From: Guillardia theta CCMP2712
Lineage: Eukaryota > Protista > Cryptophyta
DNA length: 59,273 nt
Assembly (NCBI RefSeq): GCF_000315625.1
Contig: NW_005434643.1
Span: 363,174 to 422,446, forward strand
Reading direction: 5' to 3'
Under the pieces are notes generated by a model. It did no database searches. It was given only the letters and a program-made list of their open reading frames with translations, and was not told the DNA's origin. Positions 3,460-55,485 of this stretch are shown here, piece by piece; position 1 is the stretch's first letter; each line of letters begins with the position of its first letter. A program made the position numbers and the translations under genes.

Positions 3460-4340
3460 ATCACTGCTCAGGCGGCTGCCCACGCCCGGCCGCCGTGACG
3501 CGGCGCGCCGCCGGAAGCCGCGCAGATCGGACAAGCAGGGAGCCTGTAGTGGAACTCCCTTCAAGTTAGGCCGGCGCGACAGCGGACGCATGGGCGCGTG
3601 CTGACTCGGATGGCAAGCCTAGTAGTTAAATGAGTTTTCAGTGACTCGCAGAAGGTACGGCTCCGCTGAGGCTCCAAGTAACTTAAAGGCAAACCGTGTC
3701 CTCCTCACTGTCCTCAGCGGGCACAGCGGCTGCCGAGACCAAGATTGCCCGGGATTGACGGCCGCAGTCGGACGACGCTGTGGCTGATGGATCGCCGATC
3801 ATCGGATGATGCCCGGCAGCCTTGCCGGCGGCCAGTCAGATAGCGCCGAGTTAACAAAACTCTGAGGCTCCTGTAAACCAAGACGACTTACGTGTTTCAA
3901 GGCGGCCCATGTGAGAGTCGCGGCGCGTGGGACGGTGATATCGGCAGTGCGTGACTTTGGCATAGTATATCACGGTCCGGCGCCCGGCTAGTCTGCGGTC
4001 CCACAGCACTCCGGCCGCCACGGGCGGCCGCCCCGGCGGCCGCGTGAGGCCGCGGGCAATCATCATTTCCGGAATGCCATGATTCGGACGGTGAGTGACC
4101 GTCGGTCAGTGCCGCAGTGCGGCCGGCAGTCACTGAGCCTGCGGGAAGCCTGAGTCTCAATGTCCGATCTTTTCTCTTCAAGGCGCCGCTTCCTAGTCTC
4201 GCCCGTGCCGCCGCCGCACGCCCCGGGCCCCGCGGCTGGCGCTGAGCCTCCCGGCGCGGCAGGCCAGCGGGCCCGGTCACCATCCGCCTTCCGGCCGCCG
4301 CGTCGGACTCCGGGAGTCCGGGCCGGCCGGGTGTAGCTGA
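3460..4340. repeat. GC-rich low-complexity island built from short palindromic words
   Basis: Recurring words CCGGCCGG, GGGCCC, TGACTC/GAGTCA, CACTGAG, GATCATCGGA and AAGTT; no credible ORF. Confidence 0.7.
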
Positions 4341-7870: not shown

Positions 7871-8929
7871 TCACGGATACCCAAACTTTGATCAGTTGGA
7901 GCGATGAGTGGTATGAGGTAGCGAACCGAGATGAGCAGGTGGAAGCAGTCGGCGTGAAGGGTCGGAAGGAGCGGCAGCTAGAGAATGAAGAAGATGATCA
8001 CTTGGACAAGAATGAGTGGGAGACCATGGTGGTGGTGGTGGACGAGGAGGAAGAGAAAGCGAGATGTTCAGTACTGAAAACAATGACGAGCAGTCAAGAA
8101 ATAGCGTTGCCGACCGTGCAGTGGTAAGGAGGCGAGCAAAGAGAAGGGAAATGAAGTCGAAGATGAGATCAAGGATAAATGAGAGCCAGATGAACAAAGG
8201 AGAAGAATGGTCACGTTGATACTGTAAGGAAGAGTCGTGTCGAGGAGTCGTTATGCATCGATGCATTTGTGGAATGGTAGAGGAGTTGTAGGAAAACAAG
8301 GATGACAGTGGCGGAGATGGATTATACAAGAAATCAAGTGCGATAATATGAATCCAACAATCTCGCGAATGAAGGAGATTGTGTTATGACACTGAACTTG
8401 AAGAAGGCAGGTAGGATACATAGCAAGGATACATGTAGGATACATGTAGGAAACACAGAGGAGTGAACCCTGCTAATGGTGGGGTCTCAATATCACTACA
8501 ACCCAGTCACACATCTCTCACAAGAACAGCTTTCTTACCGACATGTTCTGATGCTCGTGTTGTGGCCCCTGTGCCCGTGCCATGTTTGCTCAATTTGTGC
8601 AACTGAGGAGTCATAGTTCTGTGGGCCTGCACCCTCCGTACCGCAACGTGTAACCTGACTGAATTCAGCAGAGCTGAGCCGGAGGTCAACACTTGCAGCA
8701 GACAGGAGGCGCGAGGTGAATGCTGCGAGGTAGAAACGTTGGTTTCTGCATTACCTGGAGCAGGGGAGGGAGGCGACTAGAGCATAGTAAGGTGGGGCTG
8801 CTGCTGAACCCTTGCGTCGCTCCTGTCTGGAGATGTTTGTGACTCGGAGCTACGGGCAGGCATGTGCGATGTGAAATCTGAGATTCAATCCCTTGCTGCT
8901 CGGTCGGTAGCAACCGGTACGTGCTGCAA

Positions 8930-11900
8930 ATGACCGTAGAGGATAGCGTCGACTCTGAGCCACCTCCTCCCTCCGCTGGAGGAGGCGGCGAAAACACGGG
9001 CAGGGAGCAAGGCACAGTCAAAGACCTGCAATCCTCTGCAGGGGAGGGCGTGGAGATCCAAGAAAGTGGCGAGGGAGTCACCTTACAAGAGCAGGGGACA
9101 GTGAGTCTGGCAGGGAAGGAAGAAGCAGGCGGCGGAGGGGAAGGGGGAGAAGAGACGAGGCTGTTGGAAGCAGCTACGGAGGAGCAAGGAGGCGGATCGG
9201 GGAGCGCTGCAGTAGCGTATGCTGTCGTAGAGCAAGCAGAGGGTGAGGATGGTGGTGGAGAAAGTGGAGGATCACATGGTAAGGACGCCAAGCAGGCGGA
9301 CGAGCTGGAGCAGATAGCAGTGGCGGGTGCGGGGAGTGAGGTGAAGGTCGAAGCAATGAAGGAGGAGGGAGCTGAACGGGCAGATGAAGGAACAGGAGTG
9401 GGGGAGCAACATGGCGACGACGATCGAGGGGCCGAGATAGAGGCAGGGTCTTCATCCCCTTCTGGGAAGGTTGAGGACGGGGAGGAAGGTGTTCAGCGGG
9501 CCTCGTCCATGGAGCAAGCTATCAGTGACGTCAACGACGAGTCAACGGAAGATGTTACGCAGCACGCGCTGGGCGACTTCATGGCGCTACTCGAGATGGC
9601 AGCGGACGAGATCGACCGCAAGGAGGTGGAGGAGGGTCGGGATGAGGAGGCGCCGGTTGATTTACACCTGGTGAAGAGTCTACTGCCTCCCAACGTGTCG
9701 CCGCAGGTCCTTTCGCGCGCCTCCTTCGCTGCTCATCGCTGCGAGGAGAAAATGCTGGAGGTGGCGAGGAAGGCGTGCCTCTCAGTGCAGCGAGAGGTCG
9801 ACCTCCTCCGCCAGTGTCTCTCCGCCATGTCCTCCCTCCTCGTCCAGTGCGGCATCCGAGCAGACACAGGGGAGGCTCCTGAGGGGGCGGGTAAGCCGCT
9901 GCCGGCCACGAGGAGGTCGATAGCGGAGGAGGCGGGGGCGAGGATTTCGGTTCCCATGTGGAGGGAGGAGGCAAGGAGGCGAGCGATGAGGAGGACGTCG
10001 AGCCGCTTGCTGGAAGTGAAGATCTCGGAGAGAGCGCGACTTATGCAGGCCCTGCTCGCAGCGCGCAAGGATGTGTCGATGGTGGACCCGAGGGAGCTGT
10101 CACGGAGGATTCCCAAAGCTCAGCTGCAAGAGCTGATCCAACTCTCCCGCCGGCTCCTCGTCGACGCCGAAAAGTCTTCTGCTGACCTCTCCTCCTCCTC
10201 CCTCCCTCCCCCGATCGACCTGCGAGCTGTACGCCCCAAGGAGCACGACGACGCCGTTCCGTCTGCGCGCAGCTCCTCGGAGGCTCCGAGTGGAGGCAGG
10301 AGCGGGAGGATGGAGAGATTTTCCTCTTCCCAGCTGTGGGTAGTGCAGCGGATAGGAGGGAACGTGCTGAATGTGAGAGCAAGGCCACAACTAGGCTCGA
10401 AGAAGGTGGGGGAGTGCAGGGAGGGAGACATACTGGAGGTGGAAGGAGTCGAGGGCGACTGGGTGAAACTCTCCCCGGACAACGACGTCTTCGTGTCTGG
10501 AGGAGGAGCAGAAGCAGGAGGGGGAGGGGGAGGTTGGGTCCTGCACTTTCACAGGAGGCTCAAGATGGTCCTGGTGGCGCCCATGCTGCGCAAAGACTCG
10601 ATGGAGAATCGCAAGCTGCTTGATAGCTCGCAGATGCCGAGTTCTAGGAGCAGACAGTCAATCCCGGAGCAGGAGGAAGCGCCGAGCCTGCAGCAGCTGA
10701 GTGCCGATCATGTCACGGGGAAGCGGACAGAGAGGATACAGAGGCTGCCGTCTGAGCTTTCGAGCAACGTGAGCTTCAGTAAGAGGAAGGCGATGAGGCT
10801 TCGAGCATGGGAGGAGGAGAAGCTGCAGGAGGAGGAAGAGAACCTGCGCAAGCAGCTTGAGAAGGAGCTGCTGAGAGAGAAGAGGAAGCAGTACAGCGCC
10901 ATCACCGACGCGATCAGAAAGAAGACGGAGATCAAGAGGAGGAAGGAGGAGCCCGAGCCCGACAAGGTTGAGGAGCAGGAGGAGCTGAGCAGGATCGAGC
11001 TGGAGAGCAGCAGGGACGCGTACTCCAACCACCTGCTGGAACCATCGGAGTTCTTCCAGCAGCAGAGGAGGATGATTGAGCTGAGGAGGGAGCAGAGGGA
11101 CCGGCGGGCAAAGCAGCAGGAGCTGGAGATGATTAGGGTGGAGGAGATGAAAAAGAAGCTCGAGATGCAAGAGGAGATGGCGAGGCAGCAGAAGCAGGTC
11201 AAAACTCTCTCTCTCCCTTCCCCCCTCACCTCCCTCTCTCCCTCACGTCCTGACCTCCTCTCTCCTCTCTCCTCTCTCCTCTCTCCTCTCTCCTCTCTCC
11301 TCTCTCCTCTCTCCTCTCTCCTCTCTCCTCTCTCCCCTCTCCTCTCTCCTCTCTCCTCTCTCCTCTCTCCTCTCTCCTCTCTCCTCTCTCCTCTCTCCTC
11401 CACAACCTTCCCTAGGATTGTTCTCTGCTCCGCATGCTTCTTGCTCCTGCCCTTCCCCTTGGGTCCTCTGTCTAACCCGCGCGTCCTCTAGATATGGTTG
11501 AAGCAGAAGGCGGAGCAGGCGGAGCAGAGGAGACTGCAGATCCATTTACGTGCCGAGGAGAGGAAGCAGATGCTGGACCAGATGAGGCAACATGAACAGC
11601 GCTACATCCAGCACATCCGAGAGGTCCTTCGTCCCCTCCTGTCCCCCACCTCCGCTCCTCCGACAACCCCATGCTCGCCCCAAACTCTTTCTGCTTCCCT
11701 GCCTCCCCTGCCTGCTTTCCTCTGTTTCCGTTCTTCTCTCAGTTCTTTCATTGTCTCCTCTCTTCCATCCTTCCCCCATCCCCCCCGCCCCTCCTTTTCC
11801 CGTCCTCTCAATCCTCCCTCTTCTCCTCCTTACGCTCTCTTTCTACCTCCCTCCATCCTTTGATTTTCCCCCGTCAGATGCGCGGTGTTGTCTCCTACCC

Positions 11901-14350: not shown

Positions 14351-18357
<4,007 letters not shown>

Positions 18358-20273: not shown

Positions 20274-22237
20274 GTCACTTATTGCTCTGTTTCGAACTGG
20301 AAAAGAAACGAATCAGTCTCTTTACAAAACAAAAATCGCGAACAAACGTTTATGCGTATTAATAAAAAAGCTTGATGCGTGCAAACCATCAAAGTGACAT
20401 CTCATACCAAATGTGGAGACAAGAATTCCAACGAGATCATTCGTCAAAGGTAGGATTGTGCAAAGAAAGCTTTCAAGCAGGTAACTGCCTTGAAAATGGA
20501 GCAACAAGACAGTGATTTCTTACAATCTAACATGCCAGAGCAACATTGAGTGCAGAAAATTCGATTGAAAATGATGGAACCGTTCTACCGCGACCCAACA
20601 TTCAACCAGCACACCAAACCAGGCCCTCAGAGGAGTTGAGTCCGCGGCAGAAAGAAACCCGCAATGGCAGCATAACAAGGAGACATGATCACGACAAGCC
20701 ATGAGGGAAAAAGCACAGAGGGAGGGATGGGTCAGAGAGGCATCGGACATTGAGGCAAGACGGCGGCACAGCGATCGGCAGCCAGCATCGGTGCCTCCTG
20801 GGCCGCTACAAGGACATGTAGCGTGCGCTATCTAAGCCCTCCATTATACAGCAGAAGTTCCCTGTTATATATAATTATACTTTCATGATTATTGGTTGGA
20901 CCTCTGACTCTCTATAATTATGCAAATTGGTGCGACTTGTTTTGTATAATTTGCATAATGATTTTCAGGTACCGATTCTATCCCCTGTCGACCACCCTAC
21001 CCCAGTTCCTCAAGAAACAAGTAAAGCTCCCCGAGACCCCCCGAAACAGTCCTACTCCGGAAGTACCCACCTTTGCAAGTGAAAATTCATTATCAAGAAG
21101 GGGTACATTTTCGAGTAGTACCCGTACAAAATCACCGAAGGGCAGCGGGCTAGTACCCCCACCCTCTCCGTTGAGAATGTGAAATACGACCCTGTGAGCT
21201 GTGGGGGAACAGGTTCTGCTCTGAGGCGAGTCCGCCATCTCTGCGATCGGGCCGGGCAGGTTATATGGTTATATATTTACAATATTTTGTATTGATATGT
21301 AATCATGCAACAAAACAACACTATTACAATAACTATATATGTCAACTAAGTCTTTAATTTTCCTACAACTTATAAAATCGTATAAGATGTTTTACAAATA
21401 ATTTGTATGAAGAATTAGGCTCGGTACGTTTTGCTCGTACAACACTGGGATCCTTGTTTTTATAGAGACAACTCGCATCCTCGCCCCCCATGCTTTCCCT
21501 CTCCTCCTAGAGTCCTCTTCCTTCCTCTCCCCTCTGCTCTGCCAGCTTCTGTCCTTCCATGCTCCTTTCCTCCATTCCATTTTCTCAGACTTTCTTCCTC
21601 TTCCCTTCCCCGCCCATCTCCTTGCCTCTCCTCGTTGCCCCTTTCCTCGCTTCCCTCGCCGCTCTATCTCTCCTCTGCGTGTCATGCGAACTCTATTCCA
21701 CACACAAAAACAGCTGTTCTTTCACCGCATCACATCACTTCTCATGTTTTCTCCTCTTCTGAATTGCACCATGTACGCTTCCTTTTCCAGCCCCTTCCAT
21801 CTGCACCGCCTTTGCATGCGCCCAAGGACACACACGCATCCCTTTGTTTAGCGTGTGTGTTTCTTCTCTTTCTTGTCACAGCCTTCCGCTGTATGTCTGA
21901 GTAAGGCTCTTGCGCCCCTGTGTTTTCCTTTCTCACATTGTATTTTCTCAATGTTTGTTTATGTTTGTTCAATTCCTTAACCTCGCATTCACTCCATGTT
22001 ATCTTGGTGCATTCGCTCCTGGCTGGTGGTCGAATCGTGAGATCACTCTTCAGCCTGTTTTCATGCTGCTATCTCTACTTTCTCTGTATGCGCGAGACTA
22101 TCTTCATATTGTCTCTGATCGCCTGCCCCTTTGTTCTACCTGATTTTCACCTGCAGTTTGAAATCTGTCAGAGCAGTAAAGTGAGGGAACATTGAGATGG
22201 AGGATGCTGTGCGGGAATGTGAGACATTGAGGTGACG

Positions 22238-23470
22238 ATGGAGCCTGCAGGACCCACGATGATGATGGCTGCCGCTTCTTCGTCCCGCATCCGCAAGTGC
22301 AACTACTCCAACTGCTCCAAGAGCGTCTTCATCGACCCCACCACCGGCATCGAGCACGACTTCTGTGGACGCACGCATGCCCGACTGGCGCTGGAGGCTG
22401 AGGGTTACTCCCTGGAGCCTCCTCACGGCCAGTGCCACATCTGCCAGCTTGAAGGCTGTAACAACCCGGTCTACTATGACGAGCGAGAGGACCGCGTGCA
22501 TGACTTCTGCTGCCTTGACCATGCGCACGCCGCGCAGGAGTGGGGGCAGTGGCCCGAATCGAATCGATCTTGCCAAGGGCATGGAGACCCCAGCAACCGC
22601 TGCGCTCTGCCCGGCTGCTCCGCTCCTCGCTATGTCGACCATAGGACCGGGCAGGTCCATGACTTCTGCGGCCGGACTCACGCCAAGCAGGCAGCAGCAA
22701 GAGGTCTCCTGTCGGCGACCGAGGCTGGTGTGCCCTTCCATTGGGTGGATCGTGTGTTTTCAGGACGCGACGGGCAGCCCAAATACACGATCTCGATGCT
22801 GACAAACCACCACGAGAGGTATCAGGGTATCAAAGAGCAGTTCCTGTCAAGCTGGACGCATGCTGGGCCGAAGCCACGAGTTTTGAGGATCTTTCAAGTA
22901 CGCAACCCTCAGGAAATCTATGAGAGATACTTGCGGTACCGCGACTTCCTGGATCGTAACGGAGGAGCGCATGAGAGGAGAAGGTTCCACGGGACCTCGA
23001 TGGCTCCGGACTGTATGTTCGGACACGACATCAACTGTGCTCCTTGCATGAACCCTAACTGCGCAGTCTGCACCATCTGCGAAACCTCCTTCGATCTGCG
23101 TCATGCGGGCAACGCCACGATGGGAGGAGGTGCAGCGAGGATGGCGCTGAGGTACGGCAATGGGCTCTACTTCTCCAGGGTGTCCTCTAAGTCCAACGAC
23201 TATGCCTCGGGCTCGGAGCGCAATGGCGTGAAGATAATCTTCCTGTGCAAGATTTGCCTGGGAAACAGTTACCTGGCGCAGCAGGAGCTAATTCCCTCCA
23301 ACCAAGTTGACTCCCTGATCCGATGCCGCGCTGGCGACGCGACCTTCGACTCCATCACTGGGCTCACAGTTGCCAAGGGAGGGAAGCTAAACTACGAGGA
23401 GAACGTGATCTACTGCAACGAAGCCGCCATTCCATCGTATCTGGTGGTGTACAAAGTTCCTGACCCTTGA
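22238..23470 (+). CDS. PARP-like ADP-ribosyltransferase with three N-terminal C-x4-C...C-x3-H Zn-binding repeats; coding region has no intron
   Basis: Three repeats ending HDFC(G/C)xxHA. ART core motifs IFQVRNP, RRFHGT (H), YGNGLYFS (Y), SSKSNDY and LNYEENVIY (E), ending AAIPSYLVVY. A probable 5'UTR intron spans ~21260-22156. Confidence 0.85.
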   Translation: MEPAGPTMMMAAASSSRIRKCNYSNCSKSVFIDPTTGIEHDFCGRTHARLALEAEGYSLEPPHGQCHICQLEGCNNPVYYDEREDRVHDFCCLDHAHAAQEWGQWPESNRSCQGHGDPSNRCALPGCSAPRYVDHRTGQVHDFCGRTHAKQAAARGLLSATEAGVPFHWVDRVFSGRDGQPKYTISMLTNHHERYQGIKEQFLSSWTHAGPKPRVLRIFQVRNPQEIYERYLRYRDFLDRNGGAHERRRFHGTSMAPDCMFGHDINCAPCMNPNCAVCTICETSFDLRHAGNATMGGGAARMALRYGNGLYFSRVSSKSNDYASGSERNGVKIIFLCKICLGNSYLAQQELIPSNQVDSLIRCRAGDATFDSITGLTVAKGGKLNYEENVIYCNEAAIPSYLVVYKVPDP

Positions 23471-35424: not shown

Positions 35425-36315
35425 ATGAGAAAACCTTCACAACAACAATCACTTGAAGAGGAACTGCAACTTTTGTTGCGGATGCAACAAGAAGGACAAG
35501 ATTACAGTCTTGACTCTGGCAAAGAGAATGATGCGAAGGAGGTGAAAAATCGTGTGAGAGCCTTGAAAAATAGGCTGGCTGCCAAGAAATCACGGGATCA
35601 AGCAAGATGCTACGTTCAGAAACTTGAGGCCCAAATCTCCACGCTTCATGCGCAGAACGATGGACTGTCTCAGCAGCTTTCGCTTGCAAACTTCAAGATC
35701 CAGTCTTTGGTTGCCGAGAACGAGAAGTTGAGACGAAGACAAAGAAGTGACACCAAACCAAGGCAAGATTCAATTGAGCGGAAATACAAGTACGAATCAA
35801 GATATGCTGGAGGTCTGATGGTCGAGACCAACGACGACGTCGACGGCTCTTCCGATAGTCAGTCGTATCACTCCTCCCCGGTCAACTTTCTAGCTTCAGA
35901 GCCGCCAGCAATGGGCGTTGGGCTGGTGACATTAGAGCAGTGGCGAAAGGAGAGGCGCCGTTTGCAGCACCGGAAAGCACAGCGGAAACAAGACCATGCT
36001 GCCAACCACAAGAGCAGAACGGAGAATCTCAAGACCGAACAGTCAACAGAGGTGCAGAGCATGGAGTACTCCCAAGCTGAGCCCGTTCCTGTCAGTCAAG
36101 AGTCACAGTCCGTCCAGATTGCATCCGGCTGGCAAGGGACTTTTACTTTCACAACGCCGTCTCAGGAGCCTAATGATTTTCCTCCCCCGTCCTTGTCCAG
36201 GAACTCTTCAAACGGTCTATCTCTCTCCCGACAGAACTCTTTTTTTCAAACTGCGCGGGAGGGAGAAGAGTTCTGGCTCAACCAGCTCTCTTATTGCGAG
36301 ATAACAACAATGTAG
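35425..36315 (+). CDS. bZIP transcription factor, no intron
   Basis: Basic region RVRALKNRLAAKKSR followed by the heptad zipper LEAQISTLHAQNDGLSQQL. Confidence 0.9.
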   Translation: MRKPSQQQSLEEELQLLLRMQQEGQDYSLDSGKENDAKEVKNRVRALKNRLAAKKSRDQARCYVQKLEAQISTLHAQNDGLSQQLSLANFKIQSLVAENEKLRRRQRSDTKPRQDSIERKYKYESRYAGGLMVETNDDVDGSSDSQSYHSSPVNFLASEPPAMGVGLVTLEQWRKERRRLQHRKAQRKQDHAANHKSRTENLKTEQSTEVQSMEYSQAEPVPVSQESQSVQIASGWQGTFTFTTPSQEPNDFPPPSLSRNSSNGLSLSRQNSFFQTAREGEEFWLNQLSYCEITTM

Positions 36316-38123: not shown

Positions 38124-38329
38124 TGAGAGGATTGATCAAAACTTGGCTGATTCATATTAATGATCAGTCCGACAGAACAGTGGCATGTTGTATCATTGAA
38201 TTTTTATCAGTTCGGAATACATTAGACAGAATGATTTGGGCGGCAGGCGACTACAGGCCTGTACATAGTACCAATAGCAGTCCACAAAGATTCAACAGAT
38301 GTTAATCGGTTCAAAGATTCAACAGATGT

Positions 38330-38720
38330 TAATCAGCCGGGCGATCTGGGGAAGGGCCGGCGGCGGGCCCGGGCGGCCGGCCGAGTCCGATCGCCGGCGG
38401 GGAGGATGGGACCTTGCTGATCGGCGGAGCCGGCCCCAATCCGATCACACTGGCAGCCGCTGGCTTAGTCTCGCCACTGAGTCGGGCCTGCGTGGCGGCC
38501 GCCGCCGGGCCCTAGACAACAGGCTTGAGTTTCCGCCGCCCGGCGCTGCGCCGCTGGCCCGGCCCTGAGGCCGCCCGGCCGCAGTGGCAACCAGTAAGCC
38601 TGCCTCACTCCCCTGGCGATTCAAGAATGTGAACTTGAAGCGGGCCCGGGTAATCGGGGTGATCATCGGATAGTAAGCCTCAGAACTCATGACAACTTTC
38701 AACGGTTGGCCGGGCATCAG
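38330..38720. repeat. GC-rich palindrome-word island between convergent genes
   Basis: CCGGCCG, GGGCCCGGG, GATCATCGGA, CACTGAGTC and AACTTGAA. Confidence 0.7.
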
Positions 38721-38770: not shown

Positions 38771-41700
38771 TCATTGACATAGAACGTTGCGGAAGTTGAC
38801 ATACTGCTTGTGAAGGTGCTGCTTCACGTTGTACATCTCATCGAGCAACACCTGCTCCTCCCCATCATCTCTCCGCGTCTGCCCCCCCACTCAGCCTCTC
38901 TACACTCACCTGAACCTCGCAGATGTGCCGCCGCAGGCCCTGCGTCTCGTCCCACTGCTTGAGCGGAATGAAAGTGCATGCCCCACTCTTGGCGTTCACC
39001 GTCCACCCCACCTGACCTCTTCACATCAGACTACCTCCTCCCACTCCCCCCTTTTCTCCCTTCACCACCCCCTTGTTCACCCCGAGCTCTGTTCACCCCA
39101 CTCCGTTTCTTCTCCTCCTCTTCCCCCCTGCTCTCACCTCAAAGCACACGCAAAGATCCCTGTACCCCCCGCAAGATTGAAAGTCGTACTTGCGGTCATA
39201 CCTGCAGCCCCCATAACTCTATCGCCTCCCTTGCTACCTCCACTCACCTGTTCTTGATGCTTGTGATGTTCAAGTACACATCTCCTTGCACCCCGCTTCC
39301 TGACTGCACAGCGAAAGTCCATCAGGCGCCTTTCACCTCACCCTCTTCCCTCACCTCGAGGTCACCTTGGCACGTCTGCTCCAGCTCCTCCAACATCGAC
39401 CTGCCCAGTCCTGCTGCTACCGCCGACATCGACCGTACTTGCCGCACCCACTCCAGCACCTCCTCAATCGACTTGACCACAACGGTGCATCGCACGAGGT
39501 CCGTCAAGCAGGAGGGGTCGCGGTGGTACGACCTCACCGTCTTCTGGATGGCTCGCTCGCATGACTTCACCTTCCCGTACTCCACCCTCCCCATTGGGTT
39601 CCACTGGCCCACCCACAGCTGGAACGCCGCGCTGATCTCGTGCGCTTCCTCAAACAGCTTCTCCAGACTCTTGCTGTGCTGCCGGATCTTATTGCTCCTC
39701 ACCGAGTACCGCGATGCTTGCCTGCCCATCAACCTCGACCACACCCTTTCCCACAAACTCGCTTCCCTTGTTGTCCACGCCTTGAGCTTCAGGGAGATCA
39801 CCAGGACTTCATTGCTGATTTCATCCAACTTGGTTGATGACTTTGACACAACCCTGTCCCAGGTCTTTTCGAATCCTTCCATTGCAATATGGAGCTCTTT
39901 GAATGTCTGCCGATAGGATAACGAGTACCTGACCACAATGACGATGACAATCAGCCAAGAAAGAACTCCCAGCACCAGGAACACGTGCTTTGTGTTCTCC
40001 TCGATCGTCAGCCCGTCTCTCAAGCAGTAAGCTCCATGAAGCAGAAACACCACAATCCAGGCATAGTGCTGCACGAAGTGAACAAAAAAAATCACAATCA
40101 GGATGCATGCAATCAGCACAAAGGAAGAAAGTCCGCTGCACGACGACACAAAACCCGCATCGTCAGGATCGCACTGAATGAAATCCGACGCCGATGCAAC
40201 GATCTTCAACCACAGGATAAGATGCATGGAACCTACCAAGACGCGCTTCGCGTTCAAGGGTGTGCTGTACTTGCTCACTGCGATCGCTGAAAGATACAGC
40301 ACACCCCACAAAAACGCCAAGAACGAGTCGATCACTCTTGACACCTGAACAGTCTTCGGATGCTTCAACTCTTTGGAATTAGCGTCCACCATGAAGACAG
40401 AATTGGTAGCCAACATTCGTTGGACCATCACTGCCCCGAAGAACATCTGATCCAGGCCTCCAAACGCAATGCAGCACTGCGCAGGAGTCTTGAGCAGTGC
40501 CGTTTCGAGCGAGTTGCTCGATCTCAGCGCAAGTATCCCGTCCACATCATCGTCCCGGTACAGGCTCAGTCTGGTGTTCAACGGCAGGAAACGCTGATCC
40601 TGAGCACAATTCTTGACTATCTCCCCTATTGCCTCCACTGCCTCGTCGTAAAATTCTTCCTTCGCCTTGTTGATCCGCTCGCACGGGTTCTCGCTGTCCT
40701 CGCACGCCTTTGTCCTCCCCGTTGACGTCGTCGTGCTCACGGCAGACAGCCGATCCAGAGAGTCGATGCTCCGCAGGGCGAAGAACTCGTGCAGCAGCTG
40801 GTACTTGTTCGTCGCTTGTAGCACCTGCAGCATCTCCATCCCCCGCGGGTTGTGCTTCTCAAAGTGCCAAACCTTCTCCACCACCTGCTCCCTCAGTTCC
40901 TTCACGAGATGGTTCGATATCATCTCCACAGCTCCCTTCGCAGCTCCCTTCGCTCCCATGTCCCTCTCAACCATGTACCATCCGCATGCCCCGCTCACTG
41001 CCCCAGGACAAGCGTCCAGCCCCAGATCCCCCCTGCTGGAGTTTGACAGAAGTTTCATCACCGCCAGTCTTACCGATATCCCGCTCAAATACTTCACTAT
41101 CTTCTCAGGCTCCTCCTTCACTCCTGCTCCCTGTAGAATGCAACTCGCACTCTCGCTATTCAGCTTCGAGCCTGCCGAGCTCAGCCTCTCTATGGCGTCT
41201 CTCAGCGACACACGCCCTCCTCCCTCGTCTCGAAGGATCGGCAGCACTAGCCTCACCCTACCCGCTTTCGTCTCCAGCAGGTAGATCATCGCCAGTGCAA
41301 CCTGCAGAAAGTCGTTCTCTGTGTCCGCCTCCTCCCGCACTTGTTCCAGCGTCCCCAACACACTCGTCGCCCTCCCCCACGTGACCACCGGAACGAACAT
41401 GGTGCAGTTGCAGACAAACTTCTCCTTGCTGAAGGCGTGCCGGTTCAGCGACAGGTATGATATGCAGTCAGCGTCCAGGTAGGTCTTATGAGCGTAGATT
41501 TTGAAAAGCCATGATGACTCTTCCTCTAGCCGCTCGTGCGTCAGCCGATGAAGCTCGTCGGCAAACTCCTGCTCATTGAACCCTCCCAGCAGCTTCTTGC
41601 CTGACTCTTCGGGGAGCGTTGGGGCAACTCCATCGGGTCTCTTGATGGGGTGCCAGCGGAAGATGAAGAAGTGAACGTTGTCATCCGAGTACCGCAGAGA

Positions 41701-41772
41701 GCTTTGAGACTTGCGGTGGAGGACGTTAAGTCGGGAGGGCTGCTTGAAGAGCACAAGCAGCTTTGAGCTCAT
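38771..41772 (-). CDS. TIR-like + SAM-like + 6TM + RelA/SpoT-type (Rel/Spo nucleotidyltransferase) synthetase-domain protein; exons 41772(or further 5')-39355, 39303-39248, 39201-39138, 39011-38910, 38851-38771
   Basis: Four GT-AG introns splice in frame to give KVKSCERAIQK...DLVRC...IKNR...GGYRDL...HICEVQ...HKQY*, which are synthetase motifs Syn1-5 in the correct order. The N-terminal HFFIFRW...FADEL...YLD...MFVPVV...VLPIL is a TIR_2-like pattern. Six hydrophobic helices lie at ~39925-40480. Confidence 0.8.
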
Positions 41773-42100
41773 TCGAAATCCGCAAGATCCTTGATCAGGG
41801 TATACCCGAACTATCGTGGAACAGTAGCTGTGTCGAGGTCCAGATCCGTCACGTTCCAATTCCTTTCAACATGTGAACATGATAGACACGCCACACATGA
41901 GAGGCATTCTCGGGACGCGGAGATGAACGAGACCGGTAAGGGGTGCAGGGATAAGCAGAAACAAGGAAAGCGCTTGCGGGGAAAGGGAGGTATGCGACTG
42001 GCAGGAAAGGGCGGAAAAGCAGAATAGAGCTACGAGCTGAGGGAGGAGAGGAGGGTGAGGAGGGAGAAGTGGGGGAGGAGACAGAAAGCAGAGAGAAAGC

Positions 42101-48100: not shown

Positions 48101-50313
48101 CTCCGTCCTACTCCTCCTCTCCTCCCATCCTCCCATCCTCCCATCCTCTTTGTCCTAGCTTCCAATCCTCCACCATCACTCCCATTCCTGCTCCTCACCA
48201 GCCCTCGAACCATCCGTCGCGCCTCGCTGGAGATGTTGGAAGGAAACTCGATTGGCTGAGTCAGCAGCGCCTCATACGCCTTCTTTGTGTTCTCCTGGTA
48301 GAAGGGCGGAAGACCCACGAGCATCTCGTAGATAAGGATCCCAAGCGACCACCAGTCTGCCTCCTTGCCATGCCCCTGCTTCAGCAGAATCTCCGGCGCC
48401 ATGTAGTAGGGAGAGCCAACCTGTGAATGGCTGGTAAGATCGGAGGGATCAGGGAGAGAGGAGGGAGGAGGGAGGAGGGAGGGGTTTCAGGGAAAGAAGA
48501 AGAAGAAGAAGAGAGGAGGGAGAGAGGAGGGAGGGAGGAAGCGGGTGAGAGGAAGAAAGGAGGAAAAGAAGAGTAGGAAGAAAGTGAGACGACAGAAAGA
48601 GCGACGAGAGAGGCAAGGTCTGAGCAACAGGGGAAGATGCCAGGGGAGAGGAGGAGATATCAGAGAAGGCTCTCGTCTTACCATACTGAACGCACGATCA
48701 TCGTCGCTCTGGTCGTCTTTGCTGTGTCCGAAGTCGGTGAGGCGGATGTGGCCCTTCTCGTCGAGCAGAATGTTCTCAGGTTTCAGGTCCCTATAGATGA
48801 TATTCATCTTGTGTAGATACTCCAGCGCCAAGATAATCTCAGCTGCGTAGAAGCGAGCTCGCGGTTCGGAGAAGTGTTTTTCCCTTGTAATGTAAGAGAA
48901 GAGCTCACCCCCGTTGATGAAGTCCATCACAAAACAGAGCCGGTTGGCAGTCTGGAACGCATAATGCAGCTGGACAATAAAGGGGTGGTTGACGACTTCC
49001 AGTATCCTCCTCTCGGCTTTTGTGGACTCAACGAGCCACCGCTTGTAGACTGACTTGTCGATGTTGATGATGCCCCGAAGATGCTCTCTGTCCTGAAGCT
49101 CCTTCTCAAACTCTGCCCGAGTCTGCTCCTTCTTCTTTAGCGTGTCTTTCCGGATGATCTTCATGGCGTATATCTTGCCAGTATCAAGCTTCTTTACCTT
49201 TGAACGCATCATTCGACAGAGAGAAAAATACTAGTCCGCAACCTGCAGGACTTTCCCATATGCTCCCTTCCCAACAATGTTGAGGAGTTCAAAATCGGAT
49301 ATACAGACTCCCTCCCTCCCTACTCCCAGAAATCCTTCGATCTTCTTGACCCATTCAAGCAGCTGCAATCCAAGTCACTTTGTGTTGAGCTCACTCACAG
49401 GAGGAAGAGAAGAGGAGGACGGAAAGAGCAATCGAATGAGTCCACAAGCATAGATGACACAGCAAGCAGGTCAGGCATCTATACAGCGGGATACAGGCAT
49501 TCGCATCAGAAGGACTCGAGTCACTGAGTCTCACTGATGATCGGTTGGGAGCTTCGAGGAAATATTCCCTCCGATGAGGGTGAAAGATGCCTGACATCAG
49601 CAAGTCAACAGAGGCTCATGTCGTAAGAGCGTGAGGGAAACCGATCGTGTTAAGTTTCTTGGTGTGCTGCAAACAAACAATCACACGAGAAACGACAACA
49701 AAACAGGCAAGACCTGTTCCGCCGTAGCTAGGGAGCAACCGGCAAGATCGATGACACCTTTGGGCCTGACATCATTGATCGCGTTATATGGTTTTCACAA
49801 AAGTATGGGTTCAACTTCTTCTGTGAAAGGAAATCCTTCTCGTCCGCCCAGTACATGATCTTCCCTTCGTAAAGAACAAAATACCTCTGCTAGCATGTCA
49901 TCATCACAAGACCTCTAATCACAGCATTCCTGCTGCCAGCGCTTGACAAGCCTGCGAACCACAAGTCACGAGAGGACGGCAACAGCACTTCTGAAAGACC
50001 TGCTCTTCCCTTGCTTCGCGAGGTAACCCCTTCGGCGCAGTCAGCAACAACGGACGACAGAGAAAGATGTCACACTTTTGCAGTGGAGTCTTGCCATGTG
50101 GAAAATCCTCTTCCTGCGATCTCTTGGACCCTGGAGACGACAGATGCATCGCTGAGATCTACGTTTGCCACGTCAACCGCACGCGGGCCATCCCTTGAGG
50201 AGGAACGCACCTTGGGTGAAGACGAAATCCAACGGCTGTGTGCCTACTAACATGTCACGATTGCTGACACAGTGACGATACATCTGTACATGGCTGCCGT
50301 CCATCGAGTCATG
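44631..50313 (-). CDS. PH domain + AGC Ser/Thr kinase (Akt/PKB-like) with an AGC C-tail and a long C-terminal extension; both ends approximate
   Basis: PH domain: KGYLAKQGKSR...RYFVLYEGKIMYW...KGVIDLAGC...YFLEA...WVKKI. Kinase: GKGAYGKV, YAMK, YRDLKPEN, DFG, GSPYYMAPE, DWWSLG. C-tail: PPFKP and FSDFQY. Confidence 0.9.
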
Positions 50314-54604: not shown

Positions 54605-55485
54605 ATGAGTATCAGAAACACAGGCTCCGAAAGACAGACAGACAAAACGAAGAATGATCAAGCAAGACCGAGTACAAAACTTCAGACAGTTGTGATCCAG
54701 TCCAGAACCAAGAGCGGTCTCATCCGCAAGGATAAGCCCGTCCATGTCACCAACCAACTGCTGCAAGACCTCTTCCACATGAAGCAAGAAGACGCTGCCT
54801 CCTTCCTGGTACCCCTTCCTCTCCCTCCTCTCCTCCAGTGCATCCGCTCATCTCCCTCTCCCTATCATCTCCCCCTCGCTCCTCCCCTCCCCCCCCCCTC
54901 TCGGAGGCCTGCTCCGCCTTGCGTACTTACGTGCACCTTCCCCAGGGCGTGGCCTTGACCAGCTTGAAGATCGCTTGCAGGAAGCTCGGTATCATCCGCT
55001 GGCCCTACAAGCGAGGATGCCGCCAGTCCTCCCACAGCCCAGCTGGCTCCCCCGTCGACTACATCAGCTCCCCCTCAGACATCGTCGGCTCGCATGGCAG
55101 CTCGCCTGTAGGAGACGAGCTCGACGGCATCGAGCTCGACCATGTCGACACCAGCACAAGGCCAAGCAGCGAGATGGAGGCGTCGGAGGACACAGGAGCA
55201 TCGACGGCTATGCACGTGGAGGAGGACAACGCGGGGTCGGCGGCTGGAAGCCTCAGCTCTGGCAGTGTCGAGCCGGGACCATCACAGGGTCAGGAAGGAG
55301 GAGGAGAGAAGCGACGGGAGACGGGAGACGGATGGTGCAGCATGTCAGACTGGCAGCCGGGAGAGGGGGCGTTTGTGGACATGACGGAGTCAGGGGAGGG
55401 GATGGGCTTGGGGTGGCTGGAGGAGTACATGCCAGGGGGAGGGAACGAGTACCTTATGGGGGGAGTTTATGACTACGTTATATAG
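54605..55485 (+). CDS. RWP-RK transcription factor, paralog B; intron 54809-54945
   Basis: Spliced sequence: VTNQLLQDLFHMKQEDAASFL|GVALTSLKIACRKLGIIRWPYKR. Confidence 0.92.

Follow-up and report, generated by a model that had tools for sequence, protein, structure and literature searches.

A candidate membrane receptor with a Tas1-like RSH synthetase in the cryptophyte alga Guillardia theta

What might a eukaryotic alga do with a gene that joins receptor-like domains to an enzyme of the RelA/SpoT homologue (RSH) fold? To our knowledge, the RSH synthetases characterised in eukaryotes so far are soluble enzymes of plastids that make ppGpp. The question is raised by a gene of Guillardia theta CCMP2712 located on the minus strand, at positions 38771..41772 of a stretch of 59,273 nucleotides (contig NW_005434643.1, positions 363,174 to 422,446), hereafter called the window. 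All coordinates refer to the window, and all features of the gene are on its minus strand. The gene is intact and under purifying selection, and its five exons encode a protein of 906 residues with a TIR fold, a probable SAM domain, six transmembrane (TM) helices, a helical linker and a Tas1-like RSH-fold synthetase. We propose, with moderate confidence, that the product is a membrane receptor-enzyme that serves in defence or in the recognition of non-self, and that it would make a pyrophosphorylated nucleotide.

Gene model and N-terminal domains

The preliminary description of this DNA reported an 845-aa open reading frame (ORF) that breaks off in the middle of a domain, the synthetase being completed through four in-frame GT-AG introns. 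Both the sum of the exons and the conservation of intron positions in paralogues agree with this model. Exon 1 (39355..41772) contributes 806 codons from an ATG at 41772, exon 2 (39248..39303) ends in the IKN of the KNR motif, exon 3 (39138..39201) carries the GGYRD motif at 39170, exon 4 (38910..39011) carries the catalytic Glu of EVQ at 38918, and exon 5 (38771..38851) encodes the HxxY helix and ends with a TGA stop at 38773-38771. Their lengths (2418, 56, 64, 102 and 81 nt) add up to 2721 nt, which corresponds to 906 aa plus the stop, with no internal stop. The GT-AG introns are of 51 nt (39304..39354), 46 nt (39202..39247), 126 nt (39012..39137) and 58 nt (38852..38909), the second in phase 2 and the others in phase 0. 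In exon-by-exon tblastn, about 10 of 15 paralogous loci contained the downstream exons in their proper order. In every case where a match extends to the exon edge, AG/GT bounds stand at identical positions, and the introns vary in length. In paralogues L042-L045, most of the synthetase lies within one open frame. Three apparently transcript-derived homologues have the complete architecture in a single frame, namely P0167, which clusters with Hanusia phi, and P0016 and P0165, found on single-ORF contigs of 3.0-3.4 kb. Presumed-RNA runs contain at most 0.89 of the sampled words of the gene, and a hand count predicts about 0.87 for a spliced transcript, which is a weak hint.

Translation likely starts at the ATG at 41772, because the sequence MSSKL is common to four paralogues and the upstream DNA is not conserved. 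A TTG start at 41859 was rejected as a bacterial-code artefact of the ORF program. In the gene and its close paralogues, residues 1-29 (41686-41772) lack acidic side chains and abound in K, R, S and L, which somewhat resembles a mitochondrial presequence; distant members do not show this composition. As judged by hydropathy only, the N-terminus has no hydrophobic signal core of the kind found in bipartite plastid presequences.

Neither Pfam, NCBIfam nor PADLOC, the latter with its prokaryotic defence profiles, gave a significant match for any domain of the protein. The missing Pfam match might suggest an artefact, i.e. exons that splice otherwise, a plastid RSH or a pseudogene. That explanation appears next to impossible and is largely refuted already by the conserved intron positions, the intronless and transcript-derived homologues, the presence of canonical RSHs elsewhere in the genome, and dN/dS values of 0.2-0.3 relative to the nearest paralogue in the cytosolic parts, which denote purifying selection. 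Chance ORF, pseudogene and plastid RSH were all rejected as identities of the gene. As the library models fail on this protein, the domain calls rest on family profiles and predicted folds. We built family alignments and searched 1.84 billion representatives with the resulting profiles, which yielded 1373 matches, 104 of them at E < 1e-30. Many are full-length TIR-SAM-TM-synthetase proteins, with identities of approximately 20-25%.

The N-terminal AlphaFold2 (AF2) model, which covers residues 25-405 (predicted local distance difference test score, pLDDT, 86), contains a TIR fold with a helical insertion at aa 32-292 (40897..41679). In VIA structural comparisons, TIR-type domains fill the top nine rows in one case, with a Z of 10.4 to RPS4, and the top nineteen in the other, with a Z of 11.4 to RPV1, and the closest TIR structures are those of plants. 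Foldseek returned no match at E<0.001 for this model, and the xylose-isomerase rows in its listing were set aside as noise. A TIR_2-like domain had initially been placed at about 41225-41676; with Z values of 10-11 the fold holds, but the domain is longer (about 41679-40897). Distant members have a canonical TIR, with P0028 and P0035 above the TIR_2 cut-off. Of the 51 aligned members, 39 have the catalytic Glu. In the gene that column is occupied by Val158 (codon at 41301), and the Glu is also substituted in most of the closer paralogues. Without its catalytic Glu, the TIR domain probably serves as a scaffold, and an active TIR NADase was rejected for this gene.

The TIR domain is followed by a degenerate SAM domain, which forms five helices in the model (aa 309-392, 40597..40848). 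The SAM profile of the family matches the SAM domains of EphA2, SHIP2 and Caskin (best E 3.7e-5), SAM_2 is matched by 7 of 51 family members, and the UniRef title of paralogue P0010 reads 'SAM domain-containing'. For the copy in the gene, the evidence consists of a weak alignment to the SAM region of P0021 (E 2e-4), with no direct fold match. A SAM assignment is therefore backed at the family level and suggested for this copy by the weak alignment alone. The SAM-like helical segment of the preliminary description was probably right in kind, but its bounds (about 40740-40843) give way to a region at about 40848-40597.

The synthetase and its relatives

We read the C-terminal fold from an AF2 model of the last 500 residues of the annotated paralogue P0003, which is 73% identical to the gene product over exon 1 (pLDDT 92). 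In this model, six membrane helices, the last of which extends as a long helix, precede an RSH synthetase fold. Foldseek matched it to SAS1, SAS2, Tas1 and RelSeq with a probability of 1.0, and the best VIA scores were obtained with SAS2 (Z 11.6, root-mean-square deviation 2.9, 149 aligned residues) and SAS1 (Z 11.4). The fold check thus recovered both a TIR fold at the N-terminus and, through the paralogue, an RSH synthetase at the C-terminus. The fold and the catalytic residues of the family agree with the Rel/Spo-type synthetase first proposed, and all the motifs then listed (VKSxxRAxxK, DLVR, IKNR, GGYRDL, HICEVQ and HxxY) are present. The first half of the domain (39355..39702) carries K736, R740, K744, D758 and R761. 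The K-R-K-D-R...E-Q residues are invariant in the family and kept in the gene, and the catalytic columns are 95-100% conserved among covering members of a 69-row alignment. As the preliminary description had it, there is no HD hydrolase domain, nor is there a regulatory C-terminus, in the library scans or in the P0003 model.

Given the loss of the TIR catalytic Glu and the degeneracy of the SAM domain, the protein might be a pseudo-enzyme, or a decoy or helper subunit, able to bind nucleotide or to form hetero-oligomers with active paralogues. We find this very improbable for a protein in which all catalytic positions of the synthetase are kept and whose exon-1 synthetase part is its most constrained region (89% identity to paralogue C37a, pN/pS 0.21). 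Two other loci (L044 and L045), which encode proteins with a Cys-rich N-terminus followed by SAM, TM and synthetase, have GYRD changed to TLKT and AYRN, and their synthetases are possibly inactive or of altered specificity.

By sequence, the closest structure is that of a toxin. Searches with three independent family profiles gave Tas1 (6OX6) as the sole significant match in the PDB (E 4.2e-8 to 1.6e-6), although SAS1, SAS2, RelSeq, CapRel and FaRel2 are also there. The identity with Tas1 reaches 26% over 141 structurally aligned residues, compared with 12-17% for the other structures. K284, R288, K292, D306, R309 and E361 of Tas1 (439-residue chain numbering) correspond to K736, R740, K744, D758, R761 and the Glu of EVQ. 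We take E361 to be the published catalytic E382.

Outside eukaryotes, the nearest kin are phage proteins whose loci resemble that of Apk2. When a compact family member was used in a blind search of phage genomes, one protein was retrieved, of Bordetella phage PHB04. Its gene directly follows the portal gene and precedes a small ORF and then an HD hydrolase gene, an order that recurs on a second phage contig. This recalls the Apk2-Tis-Aph arrangement of toxin, immunity protein and hydrolase (PMC10083569). Because it matches Pfam RelA_SpoT, Tas1 and RelSeq and has the family motifs, the PHB04 protein links the algal proteins with the RSH superfamily. It scores 30.6 bits with Pfam RelA_SpoT and homologue P0143 scores 23.2 bits, while neither the exons of the gene nor the annotated paralogues match that model. 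With a profile built from eukaryotic sequences only, the phage proteins have a median score of 47 bits, whereas RelA and SpoT of E. coli and the two canonical RSHs of the genome reach at most 3.4 bits. As the phage set was partly gathered with a mixed profile, the PDB and blind phage results weigh more. In all, the synthetase groups by sequence with Tas1/Apk-type (p)ppApp synthetases and their phage relatives rather than with CapRel/FaRel or plastid RSHs. Of the likeness to toxic small alarmone synthetases first put forward, the kinship with toxins stands, now with Tas1/Apk and phage proteins, while an affinity with CapRel and FaRel finds no sequence match.

In two loci (L060:3077-5342 and L077:2244-6287), we noticed a large, mostly unnamed phage family of proteins of approximately 480 aa, encoded in the order portal, Tas1-like synthetase, small ORF and HD hydrolase, likely a further Apk-type toxin-immunity set. 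Giant viruses have RSH-like folds in BFVD, with weak E-values (Hyperionvirus A0A3G5A8M0 and Fadolivirus A0A7D3R1N1). No relative was found when viral contigs and bacterial and archaeal genomes were scanned with patterns, whose strictness makes this weak evidence of absence. Plasmids yielded none either, and no prokaryotic protein with the TIR-SAM-6TM-synthetase architecture turned up.

Tas1/Apk1, a type VI secretion system effector of Pseudomonas aeruginosa, and the phage MuF-fused Apk2 (PMC10083569) share with the algal protein the RSH fold without an HD domain, the K-x3-R-A-x2-K and D-x2-R signature and the catalytic Glu. In contrast, the algal gene is eukaryotic and contains introns, and its product is membrane-anchored, with TIR-SAM-6TM in place of PAAR or MuF. 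Plastid RSH1/RSH4 and bacterial RelA, SpoT, SAS1 and SAS2 have the same synthetase fold, but the algal protein has neither the HD, TGS and ACT domains nor the GRxK..S, DxxGxR and NGYxSxH motifs, and the two canonical RSHs of the genome are separate genes.

Which nucleotide might such an enzyme make? DLVR and GGYRDLC replace DxxGxR and NGYxSxH, so that the Asn and His that bind guanine are absent. (p)ppApp is the best single guess, and a guess rather than a result because the domain departs from Tas1 in its second half. If the enzyme is active, we would give an adenosine nucleotide about an even chance of being the acceptor, something else such as an RNA end a lesser yet substantial chance, and a guanosine nucleotide a small one. 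Given the kinship with Tas1, complementation of a ppGpp0 strain may fail even with an active enzyme. The absence of the Asn and His of NGYxSxH, which points to an acceptor other than the usual GDP/GTP, and an extra beta-hairpin with an added conserved Arg (GYR) would also suit a receptor whose synthetase modifies a macromolecule, i.e. a tRNA CCA or other RNA 3' end, as CapRel and FaRel2 do, and blocks translation without any diffusible nucleotide. That the sequence match is Tas1, with CapRel (7ztb) and FaRel2 (8pu1) unmatched by sequence and lower by fold, makes this version quite unlikely in our view.

Membrane module, outer loops and gene family

The membrane module (aa 429-618, 39919..40488) comprises six TM helices, as had been predicted and as the P0003 model and hydropathy both indicate. 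It has no clear match in the PDB, the best VIA scores (Z of about 7-9) being to generic bundles only, and a single unnamed eukaryotic cluster of the ESM Atlas spans the whole P0003 model (TM 0.68). In the linker that follows (aa 619-690, 39703..39918), TM6 continues as one long helix, then comes a second helix. Loop 2 and the segment past TM6 are basic, and loops 3 and 5 are acidic. Loop 3 (aa 533-547, 40132..40176) has a Cys pair, likely a disulfide, which is kept in the closer paralogues, with both Cys lost together in one of them. Loop 1 (aa 455-476, 40345..40410) is a ~300-residue insert in P0028, P0046, P0035 and P0054, with a discoidin (F5/8 C) domain in P0028, P0046 and P0054 (the P0028 cluster lies at L078:5001-8735). 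The loop charges, the Cys pair and the loop 1 ectodomain fit a topology with both termini inside, from which we infer that the N-terminus and the synthetase are cytosolic and that loops 1, 3 and 5 are outside or luminal. These features agree with the earlier placing of TIR/SAM and synthetase on the same side.

Loops 1 and 3 are hypervariable. Between the gene and its nearest paralogue, the outer loops are 45% identical, and the TIR, SAM, TM helices and synthetase 72-89%. The split is sharper in the tandem pair C37a/b on contig 37, with identities of 175/175 for the TIR, 123/124 for the SAM region, 72/72 for the linker and 79/80 for the synthetase, 92% for the TM helices and 28/44 (64%) for the outer loops. 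The loops of this pair differ by 21 non-synonymous and 2 synonymous changes (pN 0.21, pS 0.07), and their ratio of change differs from that of the rest of the gene (p 0.0003). A second, independent pair of paralogues shows the same combination of constant cytosolic parts and variable loops. The outer loops thus seem to behave like a sensor, a constant output being coupled to a variable sensor as in receptor families under conflict. The 5' end of one contig-37 copy (L031, ~3650-3830) lies in a different frame, close to a repeated Gly-rich stretch, which may reflect a frameshift, a small intron or an assembly error. L036 (G000:C117) and L037 (G000:C339) are 95% identical in the exon-1 synthetase segment (pS 0.03) and 60-66% elsewhere (pS ~0.5), a pattern which suggests that gene conversion has recently homogenised the enzyme part of these distant paralogues.

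The family is large, tandem-duplicated and shuffled at its N-termini, which can be TIR, Cys-rich or HEPN-kinase. A count of paralogues in the 87.1-Mb, 669-contig assembly gave at least 11 loci with the N-terminus of the gene and 183 segments matching the synthetase profile, a minimum figure to which single genes contribute several segments. Further architectures are Cys-rich-SAM-TM-synthetase and a doubled TM-synthetase. The latter is exemplified by many intronless ORFs of 1000-1150 aa (L046-L049) that encode two synthetase domains; in their second module, an ectodomain follows the first TM helix. An intronless metagenomic gene (L059:2743-7074, P0027) combines HEPN_DZIP3, kinase, SAM, TM module and synthetase. 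Often, two nearly identical family genes lie within a few kb of each other on opposite strands (G000:C4, C117 and C100). Named members come from the cryptophytes G. theta, H. phi and Rhodomonas salina, and atlas clusters point to other eukaryotes, e.g. diatoms.

The many TM-synthetase-TM-synthetase proteins, arranged like animal adenylyl cyclases, raise the possibility of an everyday sensory receptor for chemical, nutrient or mating cues, producing low levels of a pyrophosphorylated second messenger, like the cAMP of 6TM adenylyl cyclases, with no role in defence or death. Near one-to-one conservation with H. phi (76-93% in the cytosolic domains of C4a and P0167) and apparent expression in several studies are compatible with such a role. 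It accounts less well for the TIR and HEPN-kinase partners, for the toxin ancestry of the enzyme and for rapid duplication with variable outer faces. Nor was a stand-alone, Mesh1-type hydrolase found to end the signal, the two HD_4 matches in the genome both being canonical, plastid-type RSH genes, although an intron-rich gene could escape the search. We consider the sensory role unlikely, though not markedly so. There is no HD_4 match on the contig of the gene, and no search was aimed at a small Tis-like immunity gene.

Candidate function, precedents and genomic surroundings

How might a receptor-enzyme for defence or non-self sensing operate? A ligand, i.e. a microbial or viral surface molecule, a glycan or a protein of a non-self cell, would bind the outer loops or the TM module, and the receptor would cluster through its SAM and its catalytically dead TIR. 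The long TM6-linker helix would then free the synthetase, which would move pyrophosphate from ATP onto a 3'-OH acceptor. The outcome might be an alarm signal, or a drain on ATP that arrests growth or kills the cell. Tas1 and Apk2 are known to deplete ATP (PMC8118318, PMC10083569), and RelA_SpoT has been described as a toxin domain of bacteria, phages and plant pathogens (PMC3482391). More tentatively, the family might form a large, modular class of surface receptors in cryptophytes and other protists that couples new 6TM ligand sensing to cytosolic (p)ppApp-like synthesis, some members adding an active TIR NADase and hence a second output.

Several points weigh against a defence receptor with a Tas1-like output. 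By fold, Tas1 (Z 9.6) ranks below SAS2 and SAS1, and the second half of the domain has KNR..GYRD where Tas1 has KVID..GYSG. The phage relatives are known from sequence alone. In the C37a/b loops, amino-acid change does not significantly exceed local synonymous change (p 0.06 with loop sites, 0.14 with TM-region sites), and the loop test was defined after the loop differences had been seen. Proven positive selection was rejected on these values, which leaves the outer loops as hypervariable; relaxed constraint with patchy gene conversion could yield an equal pattern. Finally, the neighbours are housekeeping-type genes, and there are weak signs in several studies that the gene is transcribed in ordinary cultures.

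The architecture fits no known family that we tested, and its nearest precedent in logic would be fungal NLRs with predicted RelA_SpoT effector domains, for which an immune role has been proposed (PMC4986451, PMC10197012). Like them, the algal protein is receptor-like, with an RSH output domain in a eukaryote. However, fungal NLRs are STAND proteins, soluble and built of NACHT plus repeats, in which Pfam recognises an N-terminal RelA_SpoT domain, whereas the algal protein has a 6TM sensor, a C-terminal Tas1-like domain and no STAND domain; no NACHT or NB-ARC with repeats was found in library scans or fold models. As in SARM1, plant TNLs and TLRs, a TIR fold adjoins an oligomerisation domain, but the order is TIR-SAM rather than SAM-TIR, the catalytic Glu is absent, there are no ARM, NB-ARC or LRR domains, and a second enzyme is found at the C-terminus. 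Membrane adenylyl cyclases offer an analogy only. They also combine six TM helices, a helical linker and a cytosolic nucleotide-using domain, with doubled forms paralleled in this genome, but the algal catalytic fold is RSH rather than class III cyclase and its TM module has no specific structural match.

In the available part of the algal RSH surveys, plastid enzymes and a few domain gains are described, none with a TIR or membrane helices (PMC6881373). A 2021 review reported that the ppGpp seen in eukaryotic cell lines had no known cognate synthetase, and the only makers of (p)ppApp that it listed are bacterial (PMC8118318). We found no description of a TIR-SAM-6TM-synthetase family in the open-access literature. 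The early suggestion that such a protein was undescribed in eukaryotes thus holds for membrane receptors, but not insofar as RelA/SpoT effectors are predicted in fungal NLRs (PMC4986451). Similarly, the receptor/effector reading gains from the architecture and the variable outer face, while 'antiviral' and 'second messenger' stay at the level of inference. If it is true, the family would represent an undescribed arm of protist innate immunity whose enzyme is related to phage and bacterial toxins, and a new nucleotide signal or suicide mechanism for eukaryotes. Research on protist immunity would also gain a concrete receptor family that is open to assay in an alga kept in culture, with an enzyme domain of approximately 200 aa that lends itself to direct tests.

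Elsewhere in the window, a PARP catalytic domain (PF00644, E 4e-13) is encoded on the plus strand at 22232-23470. The other neighbours encode SH3_3 (8921-11491), MCM (15597-17318), bZIP (35425-36315), kinase (48487-49212) and RWP-RK (54838-55485) domains. Downstream of the candidate receptor gene, two near-tandem copies of a 23-nt sequence (about 38285-38335) lie beside a GC-rich stretch (38340-38640).

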